Shown here in pieces: positions 7,636-33,100 of a stretch of 64,000 nt of DNA (its first letter is position 1; every line of letters begins with the position of its first letter). This stretch comes from Antechinus flavipes (lineage: Eukaryota). The DNA is taken from assembly GCF_016432865.1 (NCBI RefSeq), contig NC_067399.1, forward strand, positions 640,832,001-640,896,000. The letters are read 5' to 3'. The notes beneath the pieces are model-generated. The model was not told the origin of the DNA, searched no databases, and worked only from the letters and a program-made list of their open reading frames with translations. Position numbers and translations under genes: made by a program.

Positions 7636-19162
<11,527 letters not shown>

Positions 19163-20239
19163 ACTCTTATGGGTAAGGAGCAGCAGTGAAAATAGTGGTT
19201 TTCTATCACCATTATGTATTCTAAAAATGACCTAGACAGTTCTACACCCCAGTAAGCAAGAGGAGATGAGCATTGAGTAGGAGGGCCACTGGAGGACAGA
19301 ATATTGAGTATGCTTTGACAACTGGTTTGAGATACTGTTTAATAATCTCAATCCTGTTCCTATATCCCCCTCAGGAAACCCAACAACAATCATCCAACAC
19401 TTAAACTTTGTGGTCATAGGTGTGACATTTTAAAAGGTTTGAAAGACATAATTTCTCAATAATTTAATAATTTTATTAATGCCAGAATCTTAATAATGCT
19501 AATAATTTACAATTAGAACAATTTTAACAAAAGGATGATTTCTCTTAGATAAAAGGCAATCATGGCAGCAGCTTAGACTTATATATACTCTTTTGTAAGG
19601 GGTGTACCCCCTGTTGGCTACAACTCTGATTGGCTACCAGTTAATGAGAGAATGAATATTATAATAAAGGCTTGTCCTGAACTGAGATTACATCATTTAT
19701 TTAAGTTAATTTCAGCCATGGCATTTATTCAAAGAATTTATCCCCACCCAAACCTGAGACGAACACAGGGGCTTCCCCACCTGAGTTGGTTGTGGATTGA
19801 GGAGAAAGAGCATGAGATCTTAAAATGAAAATGAAAAGAAAAGGGAGAAATGTGAATCTCCCCAAATCATTGGTTATTAATAACTTCTCACTGGCTTAAA
19901 AACAATTGAAGAGTGTTTATACAAGTTTATGGAGTAAGAGTTATCACAAATGCTATGGAGTAAGAGTTATCACAAATGCTATTTCACTAATGTTTCTCTG
20001 AAGAGCTCTCAGTTGGGTACTGCCATCTGCAAATCTGCCCTACATGGCTATTTGAGGGAATTTACAGACTCTGATGCTCTTCTGTAAAAAGATACATTAG
20101 AATATGCTTTATGACACATCTTCTGATCTATAACCATTAGACATTGAGATATTTGTGTTCACCAATACTTAACTCTTATTTCCAAGATTAAAATAGCAAG
20201 ACTTAAAAATATTTGTTTTATAATAGTAATAGATAGAAG

Positions 20240-20500
20240 GAGTTGAGGGAAGGGAGCCAGCACTATTACCTACTATGTGCTGGTCATTGTGCTAACTAAG
20301 CACTTCATAAGTACCTCATTTGATTCTCACAACAATCCTGGGAGGTCTGGATACTATTTTTATCCCCATTTTGCAGTTAAGAAAATTGAGGCAAACAAAG
20401 GTTAAGTGACCTTGGCCAGGGTCATACCAGCTACTAAATATTTGAGGTCAAATTTGAACTCCACTTTCTTGATTCTAGGCCAGTGCTCTACACTGAGCTG
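20240..20500 (-). mobile_element. MIR/Ther-1 CORE-SINE (one example; similar copies near 4.2-4.4, 12.4-12.9, 21.3-21.5, 24.9, 25.6, 34.9, 50.6-51.0, 51.6-52.3, 59.6-60.0 and 62.1 kb)
   Basis: cacaacaatcctgggagg...atccccattttgcag...gaggcaaacaaaggttaagtgaccttggccagggtca, the MIR core. Confidence 0.85.
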
Positions 20501-21623
20501 AGGGATAGAAATTAGGTTGTGCTGTGTAAGTTTAATAGAAATGGGCCAATTAACAGTGGGTAGGCACTGTTCAAGTGGGTAAATAAGCAATAGTCTGACT
20601 TGTAAATCTCGTTGGGTTGTCATTAATTATTAATAATTCAATTTATATGGTGCTTTGAAGTTTATAAACATGTGTGGTGCAGGTATAAATGAGTACAATT
20701 AGCTGATGTATGTATGTATGTACAAAATGTTGAATTATCTTAACATTTGAGCATTTGAAGAATGCCATTTTAATTTGGCAGTCATCAAGCATGCACCATC
20801 TGCAAAGCCTAATTCTTCTTGATTAACTTTGCCTTATAAATGCTTTTGACATAGTGCTACTTAATCAATATTGTTGACAAATGTGTCCATTGGCAGCTCA
20901 AGTTACTAAAAGTATTTTCTTTTGGGAGATTTTCACTATGCAGAGATGTTCTGTATTATTTGTCAAATGGATTTAACTGTAGCCCTAAAAGAGTCCTTAG
21001 AGGCATCTAATATGTTCATTTCTCAGATAAAGAAATCGGCAGACAAGTTCTCTAGAAAGTGTCAAACTAGTTTTCACATCCAGTCCAGCTGACTGAAAAC
21101 CAAGAATTCTTTTCACTGTCCCATGGGGCCATAAGCTCATGACTTGGTTTCTTTCTGTTTCATGTTCTTCCCTTCAAAAGAAATCTGTTATGCATGGATA
21201 AGCCAAAATCAACTGTCTTTTCTTAGCAAACGAAAACTAAAACCTTGTCACATCTTTGTAAATGAAGGTAACTAGCAAAGGTTAGAATTGGCAGGCAGAA
21301 TGGCACCATGGAAATCCTAGGGTAGAGAGAGTCAAAGGACCTGGATTTAAATCCTGTCTCTGCTATTCACTTAGCTCTGTGATCTTGGATAAGTCATTTA
21401 TTATTTTACCTCAATTTAATCATCTCTAAAATGAGAGGCTTGAACTATATGTTCTAATGTCTCTTCCAGTTTTAAAACTTAATGATCCTATGGTGTTTGT
21501 ATAGCATTTTTTCCCCTTAGAACAGTTGCAGTTGTTAGGTGACATTAAATGATTAAAAAAAGATGAGCCAAGAGCTCAGAGACATAAATGTCATTCACTC
21601 ATTCTTTCCTTTTTCTCTTTCAG

Positions 21624-21785
21624 ATGAGCTTCCTAAGGATTGATTGGTAATGCTACTTGATTATACACACACATTTACCTGGAGATGCTGATGATAAAAT
21701 ATTTGAACATGTTTTTCTTTATTGAGTCCCAGTCTGTATAATATTTACTTGGACCTTAATAAAAGGGAAACAGTTTGAACTTAAT
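21624..21785 (+). other. COX5A: COX5A non-coding terminal exon 5 (3' UTR)
   Basis: Pyrimidine tract ctttccttttctctttcag| acceptor; resembles the mammalian COX5A 3' UTR as I recall it; AATAAA at 21758. The 3' end is approximate. Confidence 0.85.
21758..21763 (+). terminator. COX5A: COX5A polyadenylation signal AATAAA
   Basis: Canonical hexamer near the end of exon 5. Confidence 0.85.
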
Positions 21786-21828
21786 TTAAGAAGTTGTTAC
21801 CTGAGTTTACATTAAAAAAAAAAAAAAA

Positions 21829-22030
21829 TGTTGTTCAGTCGTGTCCAACTTGTCATGACACTAATTAGGGCTTTCTTGCCAGAGATACTGGATGGATTTC
21901 CTTCTCCAGCTCATTTTGTAGATGAGAAAACTGAGGCAAATGGGATCCAGTGATTTATCCAGGGTCATACTGCTAGTAATGTCTAAGACTTCCTGATTCC
22001 AAAACCAGTGTTCTAACCATATGACACCAT
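21829..22030 (-). mobile_element. MAR1-type CORE-SINE (RTE-derived tail)
   Basis: Reverse strand carries the CORE (cagatgagaaaactgaggca) and the tail (gttgttcagtcgtgtcc). Confidence 0.75.
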
Positions 22031-24479
22031 CTGACCACCTCCATTAAAAAATTAACAAATGAAATGATTGGACTAATGGATTAAAATATGCTGCTTCCAG
22101 GATGAAGAAGGTAACAGTCCATCATATTTCCCAAGACAGACCATTTTACTTTGGGGACAATTCTAATTCTTAGGAAAGTTTTCTTTACTTCAAACCTAAT
22201 TGTTGCTTCACTGCAACTTCCCTTGCTTCATGGCCTGTCCCCAGGACTCATTCAAGCAAAACATGTCTCATCCCTCTAACACCTGAGTGCCCATCAAATA
22301 ACAGTTGTTATTGTTCCTTTTCATCACATTCTCAGTCATTTCTGAGTAAATTCAGCTATTTCTGCTGACCTTTGATGTTTTCATCCCCATTTATGGATGC
22401 TGTCCAGTTTGTCATCCTTCCAAAATGTAGCACTCAAAACCAAACATAATATGGTAGGTAGAGTATGATCAGGCCTGAATAAAGTGGGGCTAATATCTCC
22501 TGCTCTTGGACCTTTTGCCTCTGTGTGACCTAAGATGTTTAATTTCTTAGCTGCCATATCAAACTGTTTGGACTCTGGGAATTTTCAATCCACTAAGACC
22601 TCCCTTCATATCTTTTAAAAATGAACTTTTCTAGCTGTGCTTTTCCCATTTTCTACTAGTCTTCATTTTGCTTTTTTTTTTTGTCTTAAGTGTTATTAAG
22701 CACCTATATGCTAAACTCTGGATTTTTCATAAGTATCTGTTAAATTAAGCATATTGGATTCAGTCCAGTTTGGATCCTGACTCATCCCCTTTATTAGGTT
22801 GGCTATCAGTGGCTGAGTATAGATAAGGCCCTTATAGGTACCAAGGCAAGCATGAACTTAGAAGAGCACCTAAACACCTAAAATGTGTTTAGGTGAGTGT
22901 AAGTACCAAGATCAATCAGATGATATGTATTCATAAGAAACTCACAAGAGAATGGCAGTGTTTTGTGACAAAGGCACTGTGGGAAACATAATTCTAGGTG
23001 CTCTGGGATGTTGGGAAAGGTTTCAGGAAAGTTGCTTAAATAGTTGCTGCATTAAATTGGTTGAGACTATGGGACTTCCCACAGTCCCTCAAAAACCTTA
23101 GAAACACCCTGGTGGGGTGATTGGAAAGGAGGAGGGAGATAGTAAGTTTTGCCCAAGGATTGTCCTCCAAGGAGGACTTTGCTCTGACACTGGTGTTGCA
23201 CTAAAAAAGTTATCCCATGGAACAAGTAGGCATTTGTTCTGGCATTGAAGATGTTTCCCTGTGCAAAGTGGATACACATTTTAGCATCCCCTACAGACTA
23301 ATTTTAAGCCAGGGCTGCTAGCATGTAAATAAATTATAAAAGACATTTTAAAAGAACGTTAACAATCAAGGGACAGGGTTCAAATAGTAGGGGGCCACCA
23401 ACTAATTTTATTATGTTGGATAAAATAAGTCATGTTTCCTTGTCTGTACTAACTTGATTTTTAGGATCCTCTGCTTTCCTAATGTTAAAAGAAATAACTC
23501 ATTAAATTGATAGAATTTGACTTAACAACCCTAGGAACAAAATTTTAAAGTTGGTGATTGAATGACTGAAAAGACAAGCTATTCCTGTTATACCCACTCT
23601 TCAGGGACAAGGTCTGTCTGACCGCATTCAGTCCTTGGCATTAGGATTGCTGACTACTACTGATGACTAGGAGGAGAATGATGGTAGATAATACATCTTC
23701 ATGATCTTGACGTGGCCAAGGCAGTTGCCTCAATGTTTACCATGCACCACCAGTATTATGCTAAATTCTGGTGATCCAGAGAAAGGCAACAACACAATCC
23801 CTGTCTGCAAGAAGCTCACATTCCAGAAGCACAGCCTTTTATGATTATTGCCAAACTATTTTGTACTGCTATTTCAAATCGGGAAAAAGAAGTTTTGTGT
23901 TCCTATCCTTAATGATATATAGAAAGGTAGGGGATGAGTACCTGTAAATTATATGGGAATATAGGAAGAGTCCAGGGTGTGCCTGGATGTTGGGCAAAGG
24001 AAGGCTTTGGAGGAGAGGGCTGATACTTGAGTGGGAGTTGGAAGGGAAATATTTCAGCTAATATGAGAAGGGCCAGGGAGGCATGTCCCCATTGAAAACC
24101 TCAGTGAGTGTTATAGTATTCATAATTTACTTAGGTGCAGAGCAAATTGAAGATGGTAATATTTAAAAGGTCCTGTCCCTCAGCAACCTTACCAAGATTT
24201 TAAGAAAAGTGACTTGCCTAGGATCAACACTAGCCATCTGTATTGGCTGGCTGTCCCAAACTCTGAAGAGATCAAAGAAATGGAGAAGTATATAATGTGT
24301 GTGTGTTTGAGCACATATCAGGCAAACATACACGTGAATGTAATGTTATGTATGTATACATATATGTATATTTATAGCAAAGAACTGGACACTTAAGATG
24401 TCTTTTAATTGGAATAGTTGAACAAGTTACTGTTTATAAATCTGATAAAATAGTAAGAGAAGATGAAGGATATGGTTTC

Positions 24480-24761
24480 AGAGTAACCTAAGAAGACATG
24501 TACAAGCTGATTCAATATGAAGTCTGCAGAGCCAGGAGAACGATCTGTGTAACAATACTATTGTAAAGCCAAACAACTTTAAAGGACTAAATTATTCTGA
24601 TCCATTCAGTGACCAGCCAATGATGAGATACGTTTTTGGACGTGGCCAATATGGGAATTTGACTTGACTGTACATGCTTGTTACAAGAGATTTTTCCCCT
24701 AGTAGCGTCTGAGAGAAAAAAGTTTTTTAATTGAAAAAATTTAAAAATTAAAAAAAAAAAA
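24480..24761 (+). mobile_element. Old L1 3' end with A-tract (24750-24761)
   Basis: gaagacatgtacaagctgat...agccaggagaac... matches an ORF2 end/3' UTR and terminates in A12. Confidence 0.7.
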
Positions 24762-26340
24762 TACAAGTCCTAACAGTGAAAGGGGATGGGGATGAAAGAA
24801 GTGGAGTTAACTGCCTTAGTAGAAGTAATATCTATAATGATAGAATTGTGTTTAGAACTATTTAGAGGAAAGATCTACTGTCTCTCAAATATCAAGAAAT
24901 AGCATTTCATTAGAATAGTGTAGGATTTAGCATCAGTCCTTGGTCTCCAAAACTTATTAGCTGTATGACTTTGGACAAGACTGATCTTGTCATTCATCTG
25001 TAACATTGGAATACTAACTGTTACACTAATCCAAAGGGTTATTGGGTGCGTGGGAAGAGATACTTTGTCAATAAGCAATAGACATTTAAGGAGCTTCTAA
25101 ATGCCAGGCACAGAATTAAGCTCTGGGGAGTCAAAGAAAGGGGGAAATTAGTTCCTGCATTCAAGGAGCTTACATACTCATGAGTGAGGCAAAAAGATAA
25201 ACATCTTTATATACACAAGCTAGATCCATTGTAATTCAGAAGGTCATCTCAGAGAAGAGAGGGAAGGCCAATCAGGAAAGGCTTCTTGCAGAAGGTAGGA
25301 TTTGAACTGAGTCTTAAGCTATATAATACGTCCCAAAAGTCTTAATGCTATCTTTAACTTTTAATAACATTAAAGAGCATTAAGACTTGGGACACCATAA
25401 TTTGTTACTCTTTGGCTCTGTCAAATTGCCTCCTCAGTCTGTTCTTTCAGGAATTGGTGCTCATTTAATTCCTTCAGCTGTGGGAGAAAAAACTGCCAGG
25501 GAAAGTTTTATCACTTTGGTTTTGTGTGAACTTGTGGTCCCTAATGACCACTGCAAAATAGAAGAGTTGAAGCAGTATTATGCAATGGGAAGTGTAATAG
25601 TTCTGAAATGAGAGAGCTTGGGTTCAAATTCAGCTTTGCATGCTGTTATGTGACTTTCACCAAGTAACTTAATCCCTTGTGTCTTAAGTTTCTTCAATAA
25701 AATGAAGTACTTGAGCTAGAAGGCTTCTGAGGTACCTTCCAGATAAACTTGATGGTTTCTAATTCAATAATACATCAGTTTTATTCTTGAATATAGAAAG
25801 TATGCAGTAAGTATTGGTTAAGTTGGAAATATTGAGCTGAATGTGCAGTCAGAAAATATAGTGATAGTACTGTGTTTACAGCAGAACAGAGGAAGAATCA
25901 TAACTTGAGGGAAAAAAAAAACACCCATATTAGAGATAGAGGAAAATATAAATCTAACTTACAAATTTAAAAGTGAATGCATTGAATAATCCAATAAAGT
26001 GAAAAAAGTGGCAGGTTGAATACTAAAACAAAACTTTGCAATTTATTGCTTACGAGGAGGCCATTTTAAAAACAGATACATGAAATAAAACTGAGGGGAT
26101 GAAAATTTACTATGCAAGTGATGCATAGTATGCAAAAAATGGTTCAATAATAGGAAAACAAATCATATTAAAACCAAAACCTCCAAAACCATATGATCAT
26201 CTCAAGAGATGCAGACAGATATCTGTCTTTGACAAAGTGCAACATTCTTTTATATTAAAAATTCTACAAAGTATAAACAGATCTCTTATAAAATAGAAAA
26301 AGCATCCATCTAGAATCAAAAGTAAAGATCATGTAATTTA

Positions 26341-26784
26341 TTATTTTTTTTTGGTTTAAAATTTTATCTTATTCTTTTTTTTTTCTTATTCTTTTTTTTT
26401 TAATTTTAATATCTTTTTATTGATAGAACACATGCCAGGGTAATTTTTTACAGCATTATCCCTTGCATTCACTTCTGTTCCGATTTTTCCCCTCCCTCCC
26501 TCCACCCCTTCCCCCAGATGGCAAGCAGTCCTTTACATGTTGAATAGGTTACAGTATATCCTGGATACAATATATGTGTGCAGAACCGAACAGTTTTCTT
26601 GTTGCACAGGGAGAATTGAATTCAGAAGGTATAAATAACCCAGGAAGAAAAACAAAAATGCAAGCAGTTTATATTCATTTCCCAGTGTTCTTTCTCTGGG
26701 TGTAGCTGCTTCTGTCCATCTTTGATCAATTAAGGCTCTCTTTATCGAAGAGATCACTTCCATCAGAATACATCCTCAAACAGT
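26341..26784 (-). mobile_element. 5'-truncated young L1 with 16-bp TSD
   Basis: Reverse complement of the 268-774 family; TSD AAGATCATGTAATTTA at 26325-26340 and 26785-26800. Confidence 0.92.
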
Positions 26785-27138
26785 AAGATCATGTAATTTA
26801 GATACACTATAAATTTTTGCAACAAATAAGGAGTGAAGCAAAGATACATCCTGGATACAATATATGTGTGCAGAACCGAACAGTTTTCTTGTTGCACAGG
26901 GAGAATTGAATTCAGAAGGTATAAATAACCCAGGAAGAAAAACAAAAATGCAAGCAGTTTATATTCATTTCCCAGTGTTCTTTCTCTGGGTTTAGCTGCT
27001 TCTGTCCATCTTTGATCAATTAAGGCTCTCTTTATCGAAGAGATCCACTTCCATCAGAATACATCCTCAAACAGTAAGATCATGTAATTTAGATACACTA
27101 TAAATTTTTGCAACAAATAAGGAGTGAAGCAAAGATAC
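26558..27138. repeat. Tandem duplication, 290/291-bp unit (26558-26847, 26848-27138)
   Basis: Direct reading shows two copies that differ by one substitution and one 1-nt indel. Confidence 0.95.
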
Positions 27139-27258
27139 CTCCTAGCCACTATTATTTGAGGTAGTTCTGGAAATGTTAGCAACAGCAATAAGATAAGAAA
27201 GAAATTAAAGGGATAAAAATAGATAAGAGAAGATCATACTATTTGCTGATCATGGTTT

Positions 27259-27341
27259 TTTTTTAATTTTTAAATTTTTTCAATTAAAAAACTTTTTTCT
27301 CTCAGAGAGAGTTCTTTGATGGAACAGGAGTGCACCAGTCA
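27259..27341 (-). mobile_element. 83-bp chimeric A-tailed insertion with 13-bp TSD
   Basis: TSD CTGATCATGGTTT at 27246-27258 and 27342-27354; contents are exact copies of 24708-24758 (inverted) and 28837-28872. Confidence 0.9.
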
Positions 27342-29599
27342 CTGATCATGGTTTATTTGCAAAATCTTAGGGAATCAGCAAAGATGCTAATTGAAATCAA
27401 TAACCAAAATTGTGAGCTACACAATCAGTCTTCAAAAATCAGCATTTTTAAATTTATTTTTTATTTTCAGCATTTCTATATAATGACAAAACAAGATGCA
27501 ATAATTGAAAGGAAATTCTCTCCAAATATCTATAAAATATCTGGGTAACCAACCTACCAAAGCAATAAAAACTTGTATAGATTCAATTACTAAAAGTTCC
27601 TGAAAGGAAATCAAGAACAATTTAAATAACTAGAGAAATAGTCAGTGCTTATGACTAAGGCTTGTCAATGTAACAAAAATAATACTACCAAAATGAATTT
27701 ACACTTTTAATGCTAAACTATAAAATTACCAGGGAGGTGCTTTGCAGAATTTCATAAAATAGCAAAATTCATTTGGAAAAACAAAAGATCTAGAACATCA
27801 AGGGAAATGACGAACAGAAGTCGGGACTAAGAGGGAATAGCAATTTCCAGATCTCAAATTATATTAATGTCTCTTAATTCTTGATTTTCTAGTCTTTTCC
27901 ATTGATCTATTTCTATTTTTTTTAAACCAATACCAGATGCCTTTGATGATCATGGCATCAAATCATTAATAAGACAAATACAAATCAAAATAACCCCAGA
28001 GTTTCGCCTCACCCTACAAATAGGCAAAAATGACCACAGACAGCAATAGAAAATGGAGGGATTGTGGAATAGGCACACTAAAACATTGTTGATGGGTCAG
28101 TAAAACAGTACAACCATTTTGAAAAGCAAGCTATAATTACACAAAGTGATTAAAATGTCCACACTGAACCAGAGACTCCATTATGGACTTTTGTGTCAAC
28201 CAAATTAATAAGAATAATCAACAAAATAATTGCAGCAGTACTTTTAGGGATAGCTAAGAATTCAGAAAGTAGAAGTTCACTTATTGAGAAATGGTCAAAT
28301 TCAATGTGTGAATGTCACAATATAACTGTGCTGTCAGTAATGACAAGCATGGAAAGATTTCTATGAACTGCTATGGAGCCAAGACAACAATACAGTAACT
28401 GTAACAAATGGAATGAACAACCACTCACCATAAAGTCAAAAGTAAATGTAACAAGTTATAAAAGTCAAAAAGGACTCTAATATGAAGAGATATGAGAAAG
28501 TCAAAAGTAAATGTAACAAATTATAAAGATCAAAGAGGACCTAATGAAGAGATATGAGACTCCCCAAAGCCACCTTTGTGGAGTTAGTCTATAAATATCA
28601 CACACTACAATGTGTTTGACCAGTTGTGCTGTTTTTTCCCTTTTGAAAACATTGTTATATAGGATGGTTTTCTGGGAAAGGGAAAGGAAAGAATGCTTGG
28701 GATAGCCAGCTGAACAGGAACTGGCTTCTAACCTTTGGGTGGTCAGAGCCACACAAAGCAAGTTGGAAACAGGAGACACAAATTTAATTTCAGAGTGAGG
28801 AAAAGGACACCTTCAGGCCAAACAAAACCCACTTCCAGAGAGTTCTTTGATGGAACAGGAGTGCACCAGTCAGTGACAAGGAACAGATTGGGTATGTGCG
28901 ATGGGTGGTCCTGGAAATAAGGGGAGCTAAATCCCTCGAAGTGTTAAGATCCAGAATGCAGAGGATCGTTTTTATGCTTAGGACACAGACACAAACGGAG
29001 CCCGGGCCCTAGCTCTGACAAATAGGGTATCTACAAAATATTTTGACACTACGGTGATATAAGGAACAAGATGTCAGAAAAGCTTATTTTTTAAGAAAAT
29101 AGTGGATTCTTGTCTCCCTTATTTTTGGAGCTGCCTCCGTGCCTGCTCCGGCATATAACAGGAGTCTATCACGCCCACCCCCAGCCCTCCCTGGACCCTT
29201 CCACATAGTGTGAGGACTTCAGGGCTGGCCCCAAAGTAGGTCCTTAACAAGGGGCCATTAAACAAGGTCGAGCGTCGGCTCCGGATGTAAAAGAAGGCCC
29301 TTTTCGTCTACAGCTGCGGTGGGGACACCAATAGTGGTCACTCCTCAGGGGCTCGGGTCCGACCAAACGATCTGCCGGCTCTAACATCCCACATCTAACA
29401 TCTGTTATACATATTCAACAGTCTCATCCCCGTTTGACAGATGTGCAAACTGAGGAACAGGTACTGTTAACAGATTTCTGGTAATTTCTGGCAGGGCCAG
29501 GCTAGCTAAGGGCTGCATTCGAGGTCTACGCTAACTTCCTAATCGATTTCTGTTCTTCAATAGGACTTTCACCTCCGAGATGAAATTGGTCCTCCAGCC

Positions 29600-30125
29600 A
29601 TAGAGAGCAGGCTAGCGATGGTAAAGACTTCTCCCAGCCATCTTGCTAAAGGAGAGCCCGGCCAGGATGGAGAAAGGGGCCGGGCGCCGTGACGCAGCGA
29701 GGACGCCGTCACGTGGGAGGGCGGTTCCGCTGCGGCTGCGGCTGCCTCGCTCGGCCCGAAGAGCGGCCGCCCCGTGGGGAGCCCGCCCAGGCCATGGCGA
29801 CCCATGGGCCACGCGCGCCCCCTCCGCCCTCGCGGCCGCCGCGCGAGACCCGCGAAGTGCCAACAGTCGGGGCCCCCGCCCAGGCCTCGCGACCTCGGCC
29901 CGGCCGGGCTCCCGGCGGCGCGGTGAGGGAGGGAGAGAGGGCGGGCCCGGCCCCACCCCTCCAGGGGCTGCGGGGAGGGGGAAGGGCGGAGGGGGAAACT
30001 GAGGCCTGAGGGTTTCGGCCGGTGAGTGGGGTGGGCACGGCCGGGGGCGGGCACTGGCCGGGCCGGGCCCACGTGTCCCGATCTCGGAACCTCGGACACT
30101 CCCCTCACTTGCAGTCCTGTCGCCC
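29600..30125 (+). promoter_or_regulatory. FAM219B: FAM219B CpG-island promoter
   Basis: CpG-rich; reverse YY1-type motif CCAGCCATCTTG 29634-29645; TGACGCA 29690-29696; E-box/CLEAR-like GTCACGTGG 29708-29716. Confidence 0.8.
29794..29922 (+). CDS. FAM219B: FAM219B coding exon 1 (Pro/Arg-rich N-terminus)
   Basis: Strong Kozak gccATGG; GRAPGGA resembles human DRAPGAA; phase-0 donor GCG|GTGAGG. Least certain exon because homology is weak. Confidence 0.7.
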
Positions 30126-33100
30126 TGCCTTAGCTGGTCCAGCGCCCCTCGGCTTCCATCCTTCCCATCTCTCCCTCTTCCCATTCCCGAGTTTTCTCTC
30201 CTCATCCTCCCCTCCTGCCCTTCCTCCTCTCTTCCCCCTTCCTCCCCATCCCTCCTCCCTGTCTCTCCTCCATTCTCCTCCCTCCCCAACCTCCACACCC
30301 CTGGGTCTCTCCCCCTCAGGAAGATGCCTGGAGAACTCCAGGGGGTGTCATTGCTTTAGGGGCGCTGCTGTAGGAGGCTCCCACCTGGCAGGAGGCTGTT
30401 TGTTGCCCTTCAGCAAGCTGCCCTTGCCCCCGCAGGTGGTGAGTGGCTACAAGCGGGTAGACTGGGCTCCAGAGGCAGTAGAGAAAAGAGGACCGTACAT
30501 CATGACCCGAATGCCTTCCATCCAGGCCAAGTTGCGTGAGTATTCGGGGTTTTGATTGGTTCCTATGCAGGAGTCCATGGGGACCGCAGTTCCTGCAATC
30601 ATAGATTTGGAGTCAGCTTAGGGGTCTCCTAGTTGAACTCATTCATTTTTCAGGTGAGTTCAGAAGGCCGCCCTGTTTGTAGGAGCCACAGCTGGGACAG
30701 GAACCAGGGCCTGGGTCTTAGTCCAGCCCTCTGTAGACTGTGCGGTCCCTGGCCCGATGCAGTCTCAGGCTTGGTTCTGGCCCAGCTTGAGTTACATCCC
30801 CACAGTCCAAAGTCAGATTACTGGAGAACTCTACCTGCCCAGGCCCTCTGGCAGTCCTGCCCTCTTATCAGATTAATATAAGACCGAATGATGGTATTGC
30901 ACTTGAATCTTGTTTTCTCATGTATAAATAAAGGCAGCTTTGCAGAGGAAACTATAGGAAGCCACAAGAGACCACAGTGAATATCAGGAATCCTCTGGAA
31001 GGGAAGGAAGAAGGGGTCCTCCCCTTAGTGACCATATATAGAGGAGTGCTGATTGGCCTCCCTCTTTGGCAGTGGGGGGAGGAAGGTGGGGCACTAGAAG
31101 CCTGGATACTTGGCCCTTCTGAGGGCTCTTTATGAGGCTGCCTCCATGCTGGGATATTAGGGCTTTCTCCTCCACTACATGAGGGGCGCTATATCAAAGA
31201 CAGTAATTTGATTGTATTTTATTCAGTTCACAGATCTGACTAAATTATAATTATATAATATTATAATAATAAATATATAAAACTGCCATTCAGTTTGTCT
31301 TTGAGTGATCACTTGTTTAGCTGTAAGAACCTTATGAAAAGTGACCCTATTAACTTGGGCTCCTTAATTTTCCAGAGAAGCACCGAGATCTGGCAAAGGC
31401 TGTCCTGCGGAGGAAAGGCGTGATGGGAGCCTCTTCACATCATCCCAACTCTTCAGGGAAAAGGTTCCTTCCAACTTCCTGTTTTTTCACTTTTTCTGTG
31501 CAAGAGTATTTCCAGGGACTGCCATTAGCATTCCTTAGGCAGTTGGGCCTCAGGATACGGGGCTGGAATTGAGGACACTGAGTTTCAAGTAATGCCCAGC
31601 TTTCTACTTTGGGGGATGATGTAATATAGGTGAAGAAAAGCTTTAGTTTAAATACAAGGTGATATTACTGTAAGAGAGAAGCCAGCAATGAGGGGAAGGA
31701 ATTGGATTCTGTAGCCTCCCCTTCTCTTTGGTTACAGTGGAAGTATTTGTTGGGATGGAGGTTAAGAAAAGTAGAAATCGTTTCCAGTAAGAGGCATTTA
31801 ATAAATATTTGATATTCTGTGAACCTATGAAAAAGAGACCCTGCGGCATGAGCTAATGCAGATTTGAAGGTAAAGATCACTTTATCCTTGTTATTAAAGA
31901 ACTTCTTATCTAGTGGGAAAATAAAATGTACACAATAAAATACTGTGGTGAGAATTAAATGAGATACTAATGGCAAAGTTCTACACTAAATCAAATGAAA
32001 AAGTAATACTTGCAAATAAAGTGTAATTAGAGAAGTATGAACAAGGTTGTCATCATAATTCATAGTTAATCTGTAATGTGGGTGGGAGACCAGCTTCTTT
32101 CTAGATTTAAATATATAATTCCATGACTTCTCTTTGGGAGGATAATGGAGAGTTTTTGTGGAAAAAATAGTGGTTGTGAACTGTTAAGAATGAGAAGAGC
32201 AAGAAAGACCATTCTAGGTATAGGAAATGATGTCTGTGGGGGCCTAGACAGAGAATGTCTCATTGAGCAGGCTCACACTAAAGTCAGGTGAGTGAGATGA
32301 GGCTGCCAGGTGAGAGTGGAAACAGGCTTCAGGGTTCAGGAGTGATTGTGCAGGCAGTGGGCAGGCCCCAAAGCCTTGTGAACATGAGCAGTGGTCTGCA
32401 CTTGTCAAACCGAGGCACTAGTGGTGTCTGCCCTGGTCAGATTGGGGCTTGTGAGATGAGGGCAGCCACTGAGGACATCCTGCTAAGATGGAGTGGACAG
32501 GAGATAGTGGCTGGGTGCAGGAAGCCTGGAGGGGGACAGCAGAGAACCTGTGGTTGTGAGAGAAGGGCAGTATTGCCCAAAGGGGGAAAGTCAGCAAGAG
32601 CGGCTGAGCTGATGCAGGGATGAGGGAAAGGGAGCCTAGAGAGATGGTTGGTGACTTGCCTAATGCCACACAGGTTGTACTGAGAGCATGGATTTCATCT
32701 CAAGATCCCTGACACCAAAAAATGAGCTTGGGTGGTAGGGAGAAATGCAGCTGTGGTGCCTAGGAGAGAGGTCAGGACTGAATTTATATATGTGGAGATG
32801 AAAGTGAAAGATGAATACTTGGAACTAGGAGAGATTATAAGAGAGAGGACCTAGAGAGGACCAAAGGGTCAGCCTTGGGGACTAGAAGTGGAAGAGAAAC
32901 CTCAGAGGAGGAATTCAAGAAGATAGGGTGGTCCCCAGTGTCAGATGTTGAAAAGGGGGCCAGAAGGGTAAAGTTTGAGCAAATAGGCCATTGGATTTCG
33001 GTTTGGGGAGGTCCTTTTTGACTTTCACAAAAAAGCCGATTTAGCGAATGATAGGGATGGAAGGCAGTTGGTTTACAAGTTGAGGAGTGAGTCATGGGTA

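Follow-up and report, generated by a model that had tools for sequence, protein, structure and literature searches.

An 83-bp insert copied from two neighbouring donors and flanked by a 13-bp duplication between COX5A and FAM219B in Antechinus flavipes

Locus and structure of the insert

The 64-kb window, which is the whole stretch of Antechinus flavipes DNA analysed here, carries the plus-strand exons of COX5A, whose stop codon occupies 19160-19162. The first AATAAA past this stop codon is located at 19663 and a further one at 21758. An exon search for FAM219B returned a marsupial cluster, and the locus of the Antechinus flavipes protein (GCA_016432865.2, CM028218.1) is 100% identical to window positions 19794-30500. 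The ATG of FAM219B is at 29794. An insertion is found in decayed repeat DNA 2.4 kb upstream of FAM219B. It is neutral in its functional effect. The open reading frame beside the insertion site has no match by exact look-up or homologue search, and Rfam gives no match anywhere in the 64-kb window. The parts of the insertion are the following.

27246-27258, plus strand: target-site duplication, left copy (13 bp); its 3' TTT is the putative primer end; single copy in Sarcophilus
27259-27306, plus strand: insert piece 1 (48 nt), reverse complement of 24708-24755; carries the Antechinus-specific donor state
27306-27341, plus strand: insert piece 2 (35-36 nt), direct copy of 28837-28872 (36/36); carries Antechinus-specific donor states
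27342-27354, plus strand: target-site duplication, right copy (13 bp), identical 13-mer

Direct comparison of 27246-27258 with 27342-27354 gives identical 13-mers, which bracket an insert proper of 83 bp (27259-27341). The left part, 27256-27306, is an exact reverse complement of 24708-24758 (51/51). The leading three T of this match sit within the left copy of the duplication, leaving 48 nt for the insert proper. Pieces 1 and 2 overlap by one nucleotide at position 27306, and no mismatch is present in the 87 copied bases when the 83-nt insert is compared with its donors. In a search of the window, neither piece was found outside its donor and the insert, and exact matches of 51 and 36 nt are far more than chance would give. 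A sequence-only reading of the locus had described a two-donor insert with a 13-bp duplication, matches of 51 and 36 nt and a 1-nt overlap, and every one of these coordinates is confirmed.

Along the insert the joints overlap by 3 nt (TTT), by a single A and by 0 nt; at the last joint CTGA faces GTGA, with three of four nucleotides in common once a mismatch is tolerated. On the plus strand, ...GGTTT-3' at the right edge of the duplication is continued by the complement of plus-sense donor 1, starting inside an A-run, then by plus-strand donor 2 and finally by the 13-mer again. The left donor, 2.5 kb upstream of the insertion, is thus inverted in the insert and the right donor, 1.5 kb downstream, is direct. 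Neither retroelement sequence nor distant RNA sequence is present in the insert.

Donors, empty site and age

The two donors are located on either side of the insertion.

24708-24761, plus strand: donor 1, ends in a genomic A12 run; orthologues in Sarcophilus and Sminthopsis
28837-28872, plus strand: donor 2, 0.92 kb upstream of the FAM219B ATG (29794); orthologues in Sarcophilus and Sminthopsis

The A-run of donor 1 comprises the 12 A of 24750-24761. The T-run of the insert (27256-27264) has at most 9 T and every one of them is encoded by this genomic A12. Donor 1 has a single polyadenylation hexamer, ATTAAA at 24747-24752, and it runs into the beginning of the A-run. Donor 2 is situated 0.75-0.9 kb upstream of a CpG-island promoter, and its position 0.92 kb from the ATG agrees with the approximately 0.9 kb given previously.

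Both donors are orthologous in three dasyurids (Antechinus, Sarcophilus and Sminthopsis). Donor 1 contains an Antechinus-specific 9-nt expansion, TTTAAAAAT, that is absent in Sarcophilus and Sminthopsis and present in the insert. At the sites of donor 2 that differ in Sarcophilus and Sminthopsis, the insert has the Antechinus bases. Since the insert carries the Antechinus-specific states of both donors, its source is this locus, within the Antechinus lineage, rather than a repeat family. Given their orthologues, the donors are old, single-copy, positional sequence.

The end of donor 1 is an A-run, and we take this donor to be possibly an old L1 3' end or an ancient retroposon tail, as known from marsupial L1 3' ends. 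This would suit an ordinary short retroelement copy. Against such an origin, each donor is single-copy within the window and shared as an orthologue by three species, and the insert has Antechinus-specific donor states including the 9-nt expansion; a multi-copy short retroelement is rejected on account of these orthologous, lineage-specific states. An assembly artefact is rejected as well and effectively refuted, as the junction words occur in contigs of two samples (see below). Taken together, a short retroelement copy or an assembly artefact is very improbable. The insertion site itself lies presumably inside an old L1 ORF2 (FADD region). Searches for an L1 identity of the host sequence and donor 1 gave no Pfam hit for five stop-free pieces and only noise in a protein atlas search, and relaxed blastn against other repeats in the window returned only A/T-tail matches.

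Donor 2 was also considered as a spliced mini-exon. This was rejected; its AG/GT flanks are weak and the insert has no neighbouring exon sequence.

The Sarcophilus harrisii orthologue (L003) is alignable over the region with 88-95% identity. At its empty site, L003:7503-7515, the 13-mer is present once and runs straight into ATTTGC. Those 96 bp that correspond to the insert and the second copy of the 13-mer are missing, and no sequence was lost at the insertion site. The state of the orthologous site was read from Sarcophilus, since Sminthopsis is uninformative there: it has no counterpart of the whole host segment 25353-27681. A precise deletion in Sarcophilus is rejected because the donors account for the insert.

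The segment 25353-27681 is missing in Sminthopsis, where L002 is contiguous at ~7920-7927, and is present in Sarcophilus, so that it was either gained by insertion in Dasyurinae alone or deleted in Sminthopsis. The adjacent stretch 27682-27796 starts exactly at the edge of the missing segment. It is 97% identical to Sminthopsis L002:7920-8034, with flanks at 81-87%, and is thus unusually conserved for intergenic DNA.

The distribution of the insert was followed with 31-mer words. Sampled words of 24500-29000 are present in six organisms at shares of 85%, 54%, 51%, 41%, 24% and 15%. For the junction region 27229-27371, in which 76% of the words span a junction, all 11 sampled words are found in contigs of two samples of the best-matching organism (A). 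Two close relatives, organisms B and C, have 2 of 11, which equals the expectation for the donors alone. If the insert were present and its words survived at the general rate of B and C, two or fewer of 11 would be found with a probability of ~0.02-0.03, a rough value because the words overlap. Judging by word shares, the insert seems confined to the lineage of organism A, and this restriction is consistent with the absence of mismatches in the 87 copied bases. The sequence-only reading had made its case dependent on an orthologous empty site with a single 13-mer, on donors that are not a multi-copy repeat and on supported junctions, and all of these were found. The insertion is very young and goes back to one event in the lineage leading to Antechinus flavipes. 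We regard as established its polarity and its young age, as well as both donors, the empty site and the three junctions.

Neighbouring rearrangements

Two further Antechinus rearrangements are located directly to the left of the insertion site.

26341-26784, minus strand: retroposon 3' fragment (444 bp), Antechinus-lineage, with AATAAA and a long A-rich tail; absent in Sarcophilus
26555-26844 and 26845-27134, plus strand: tandem duplication of 290 bp, two units that differ by 1 substitution and 1 indel

A 16-bp duplication (26325-26340 and 26785-26800) brackets the retroposon, whose tail measures ~75 nt. A second copy at 389-778 is 94% identical and ends in AATAAA and poly(A). This family is putatively marsupial L1. 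Its absence at the Sarcophilus site indicates that the family was active after the split of Antechinus and Sarcophilus. The retroposon entered on the same branch by genuine target priming, 170 bp away from the two-donor insert in ancestral coordinates, and the retrotransposition machinery was therefore active there.

In the 16-bp and the 13-bp duplication alike, the first base lies exactly 2 nt ahead of GATCATG and the last bases are TTT(A). The chance of a shared 7-mer at equal offset is ~10⁻⁴ to 10⁻³ for a likeness noticed post hoc; it may hint at a second-strand cleavage preference.

The right end of the 290-bp tandem duplication is ~110 bp to the left of the insertion site, and Sarcophilus has one unit's worth of this sequence. 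The duplication spans the 5' junction of the retroposon, and its own junction lies in an imperfect 11-nt homology. The divergence of the two units predicts ~0.6 differences per 87 nt. Duplication and insert could accordingly be of the same age, as far as sequence divergence allows an estimate.

Three Antechinus-branch rearrangements are thus located within 1 kb of a 10-kb intergenic region. Furthermore, a 65-bp unit is present twice at 28432-28559 (89% matches), between the host repeat and donor 2.

Sarcophilus has a local insertion of its own. L003:8445-8608 is a direct copy (163/164) of L003:5096-5259, which is located 3.2 kb upstream. This 164-bp copy sits at the place of window positions 28293-28297, where Antechinus and Sminthopsis have the empty state. 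It has neither a duplication nor an A-run, and two substitutions are found beside its left junction. Since it is ~1 kb away in the orthologue, local templated insertion of a DNA type, free of L1 hallmarks, does occur in this region. Together with the tandem duplication bounded by microhomeology 110 bp from the insert, it favours template switching on DNA independent of L1, a reading with a high prior because the region shows other local templated insertions.

Break site, templates and polymerase

Three features of the insert point to a break of the L1 ORF2p type. The 13-bp duplication, present as a single copy at the empty site, is within the range of ~7-20 bp of ORF2p target-primed products. 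The nick has a TTT/A core, which is found at ~1% of positions per strand. Copying begins in the longest A/T run within 3 kb, and runs of at least 10 hold only 7% of the possible TTT-priming registers. Furthermore, the post hoc likeness of the 13-bp and 16-bp duplications around GATCATG and the genuine retroposon so close by on this branch speak for such a break.

Other features point away from canonical retrotransposition. The nick had been described as close to TTTT/AA; the TTT/A core stands, but the full site GTTT/AT has two mismatches to the consensus, and two or fewer mismatches are found at 9% of random positions. According to the human snap-velcro rule for L1 primers (PMC4014453), the snap (GTTT) is open and the velcro (TCATGG) loose, which makes this a poor L1 primer. 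Non-templated poly(A) is absent at the primed end, where the T-run is fully encoded by the donor. The A-tail, previously taken as a hallmark of target-primed reverse transcription, is withdrawn as such, its at most 9 T all stemming from the genomic A12. There is no polyadenylation signal 10-30 nt upstream of the A-tract, which is the position that identifies Class 1 TSIPs. The tail is genomic, the nick is off consensus, the primer is poor and both donors are local.

The insert resembles several known products in part. Like Class 1 templated sequence insertion polymorphisms (TSIPs; Onozawa and Aplan, PMC5110952), which ORF2p makes in trans from non-L1 RNA, it is short and of non-retroelement origin, with a target-site duplication, an A-run where priming took place and a nick resembling TTTT/A. 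Class 1 TSIPs, in contrast, derive from distant loci, have 10-40 non-templated A and a polyadenylation signal 10-20 nt upstream, whereas here there are two pieces, local donors and a genomic A-run. Chimeric and complex L1-mediated insertions (U6/L1, PMC13174262; inserts of several transcripts and rearrangements nearby at ORF2p breaks, PMC11702581) likewise combine two templates within one duplication-flanked insert, a structure that template switching or twin priming could each explain. They hold L1 or polyadenylated RNA and abundant, distant partners, whereas no L1 is present here and the partners adjoin the site. The event is a hybrid outside the classes compared: it has TPRT-type junctions, no poly(A), no retroelement and two neighbouring donors.

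On balance, we favour a local templated patch at an ORF2p-type staggered break, at somewhat better than an even chance. The plus strand would be nicked at GTTT/AT and the minus strand 13 nt leftward. The plus-strand 3' end (...GGTTT) would then pair with the A12 tract 2.5 kb upstream, and a polymerase would copy 48 nt from a plus-sense template at donor 1. A switch with 1 nt of overlap would lead to the second local template 1.5 kb downstream, from which 35-36 nt would be copied. Joining of the product to the other end and fill-in would yield the 13-bp duplication. We infer both ORF2p as the maker of the break and the identity of the polymerase. When ORF2p was expressed experimentally, its breaks acquired insertions from several donors as well as locally templated changes (PMC11702581). 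In the literature we found no published germline case of ORF2p copying templates beside its own nick.

The templates of such a patch may be DNA or RNA; both donors are colinear with the genomic DNA of the locus. With DNA templates, resected ends or a replication fork would be copied by the DNA-dependent activity of ORF2p or by a host polymerase; this is a tentative assignment for a patch initiated by ORF2p. RNA templates, i.e. local nascent RNA, are somewhat more doubtful, and the lean towards single-stranded local DNA is slight.

Copying of local RNA by the L1 reverse transcriptase, in any of its variants, shares the hallmarks of the break (duplication, nick and A-tract start) with the ORF2p reading in general. 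ORF2p favours RNA templates that present an A-tract. This preference would explain the start in A12, but the tail is genomic and not poly(A), and A12 would be internal to a transcript reaching 5 kb past the first COX5A AATAAA. The sequence-only reading had placed donor 1 about 3 kb past the COX5A polyadenylation site. The distance from the AATAAA at 19663 is ~5 kb, and ~3 kb holds only if the signal at 21758 is used. Insertions of several RNAs by template switching or twin priming are on record (PMC13174262, PMC11702581). The trans-templates known for ORF2p come from distant loci, however, and are either polyadenylated RNAs or small RNAs of high abundance (PMC5110952, PMC13174262); the donors here are local.

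Two arrangements of the RNA can be distinguished. In the first, a convergent nascent pair is copied, with plus-sense COX5A read-through for piece 1 and minus-sense RNA from upstream of the FAM219B promoter for piece 2. Upstream antisense RNA is plausible at donor 2, given its distance from the CpG-island promoter. Two independent local RNAs in one event are unprecedented, and the orientation of the pieces needs two separate transcription assumptions where DNA polarity needs none; we regard this pair as rather unlikely. In the second arrangement, a single long plus-sense transcript serves both pieces, with twin priming of piece 2 at the opposite DNA end. Were the minus-strand 3' end the primer of piece 2, its template would be plus-sense and one transcript could serve for both; overall, a single transcript is improbable. 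The earlier statement that the second template must be minus-sense does not follow, since under twin priming the template would be plus-sense, and DNA strands would do just as well.

The main competitor of the ORF2p-initiated patch is the L1-independent template switching on DNA introduced above, by polymerase-theta-type end joining or MMBIR/FoSTeS. In the theta route, the plus-strand 3' end snaps back on its own upstream single-stranded DNA (donor 1 inverted) and next anneals in trans to the single-stranded minus strand across the break (donor 2 direct). In the replication route, the nascent strand moves in turn to two templates close by and resumes 13 nt behind the position that it had left. 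Resection in the 5'-to-3' direction leaves plus single-stranded DNA on the left (donor 1) and minus single-stranded DNA on the right (complement of donor 2), so that the left donor is expected inverted and the right donor direct. The observed orientation is exactly this prediction of resection polarity for a left 3' end. Polymerase theta has both cis (snap-back) and trans modes of templated insertion (PMC4912351), and the inverted own-side copy followed by a direct other-side copy, with short overlaps at the joints (3, 1 and 0 nt, the last 3 of 4 with a mismatch), agrees with its products. The local position of both donors fits DNA in cis. Germline multi-template insertions with microhomology are known (PMC8421209) and provide a precedent; these MMBIR/FoSTeS products, termed MMB-TI, resemble the present case also in the return to the original template and in the tandem duplication close by.

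Several observations argue against this route. The 13-bp duplication, the TTT/A nick and the start in A12 would all be coincidence, with a rough joint chance of at most 10⁻³, and these three features are foreign to MMB-TI. Polymerase-theta inserts usually originate from within tens of bases and are accompanied by deletions, whereas the donors here are 2.5 kb and 1.5 kb away and the site has a duplication and no deletion. MMB-TI is defined by templates within 100 bp (PMC8421209), and overlaps of 1 nt and 0 nt are weak for this class. Furthermore, 83 nt of supposedly error-prone synthesis would have proceeded with no additional mutations. Template switching on DNA independent of L1 is a serious possibility, well short of an even chance.

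The ORF2p-initiated patch suggests a more general capacity. After nicking, L1 ORF2p might copy a tethered neighbouring nucleic acid, i.e. a nascent transcript with an internal A-tract or single-stranded DNA, and then switch to a second local template. The products would be duplication-flanked, retroelement-free "cis-templated patches". We put this forward with considerable doubt, and one case cannot establish the mechanism. The value of the case is its clean reconstruction, with both donors, the empty site and the lineage known, which shows the features that a genome-wide census should score. If breaks of the ORF2p type are sometimes patched locally, part of the small "templated insertions" booked as errors of replication or end joining would be L1 damage. 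With RNA as the template, such patches would keep a record of the intergenic strands that the germline transcribed. Cis-templated patches, if true, would constitute a type of L1 footprint that has gone unrecognised, and they might preserve a fossil record of nascent transcription in the germline.
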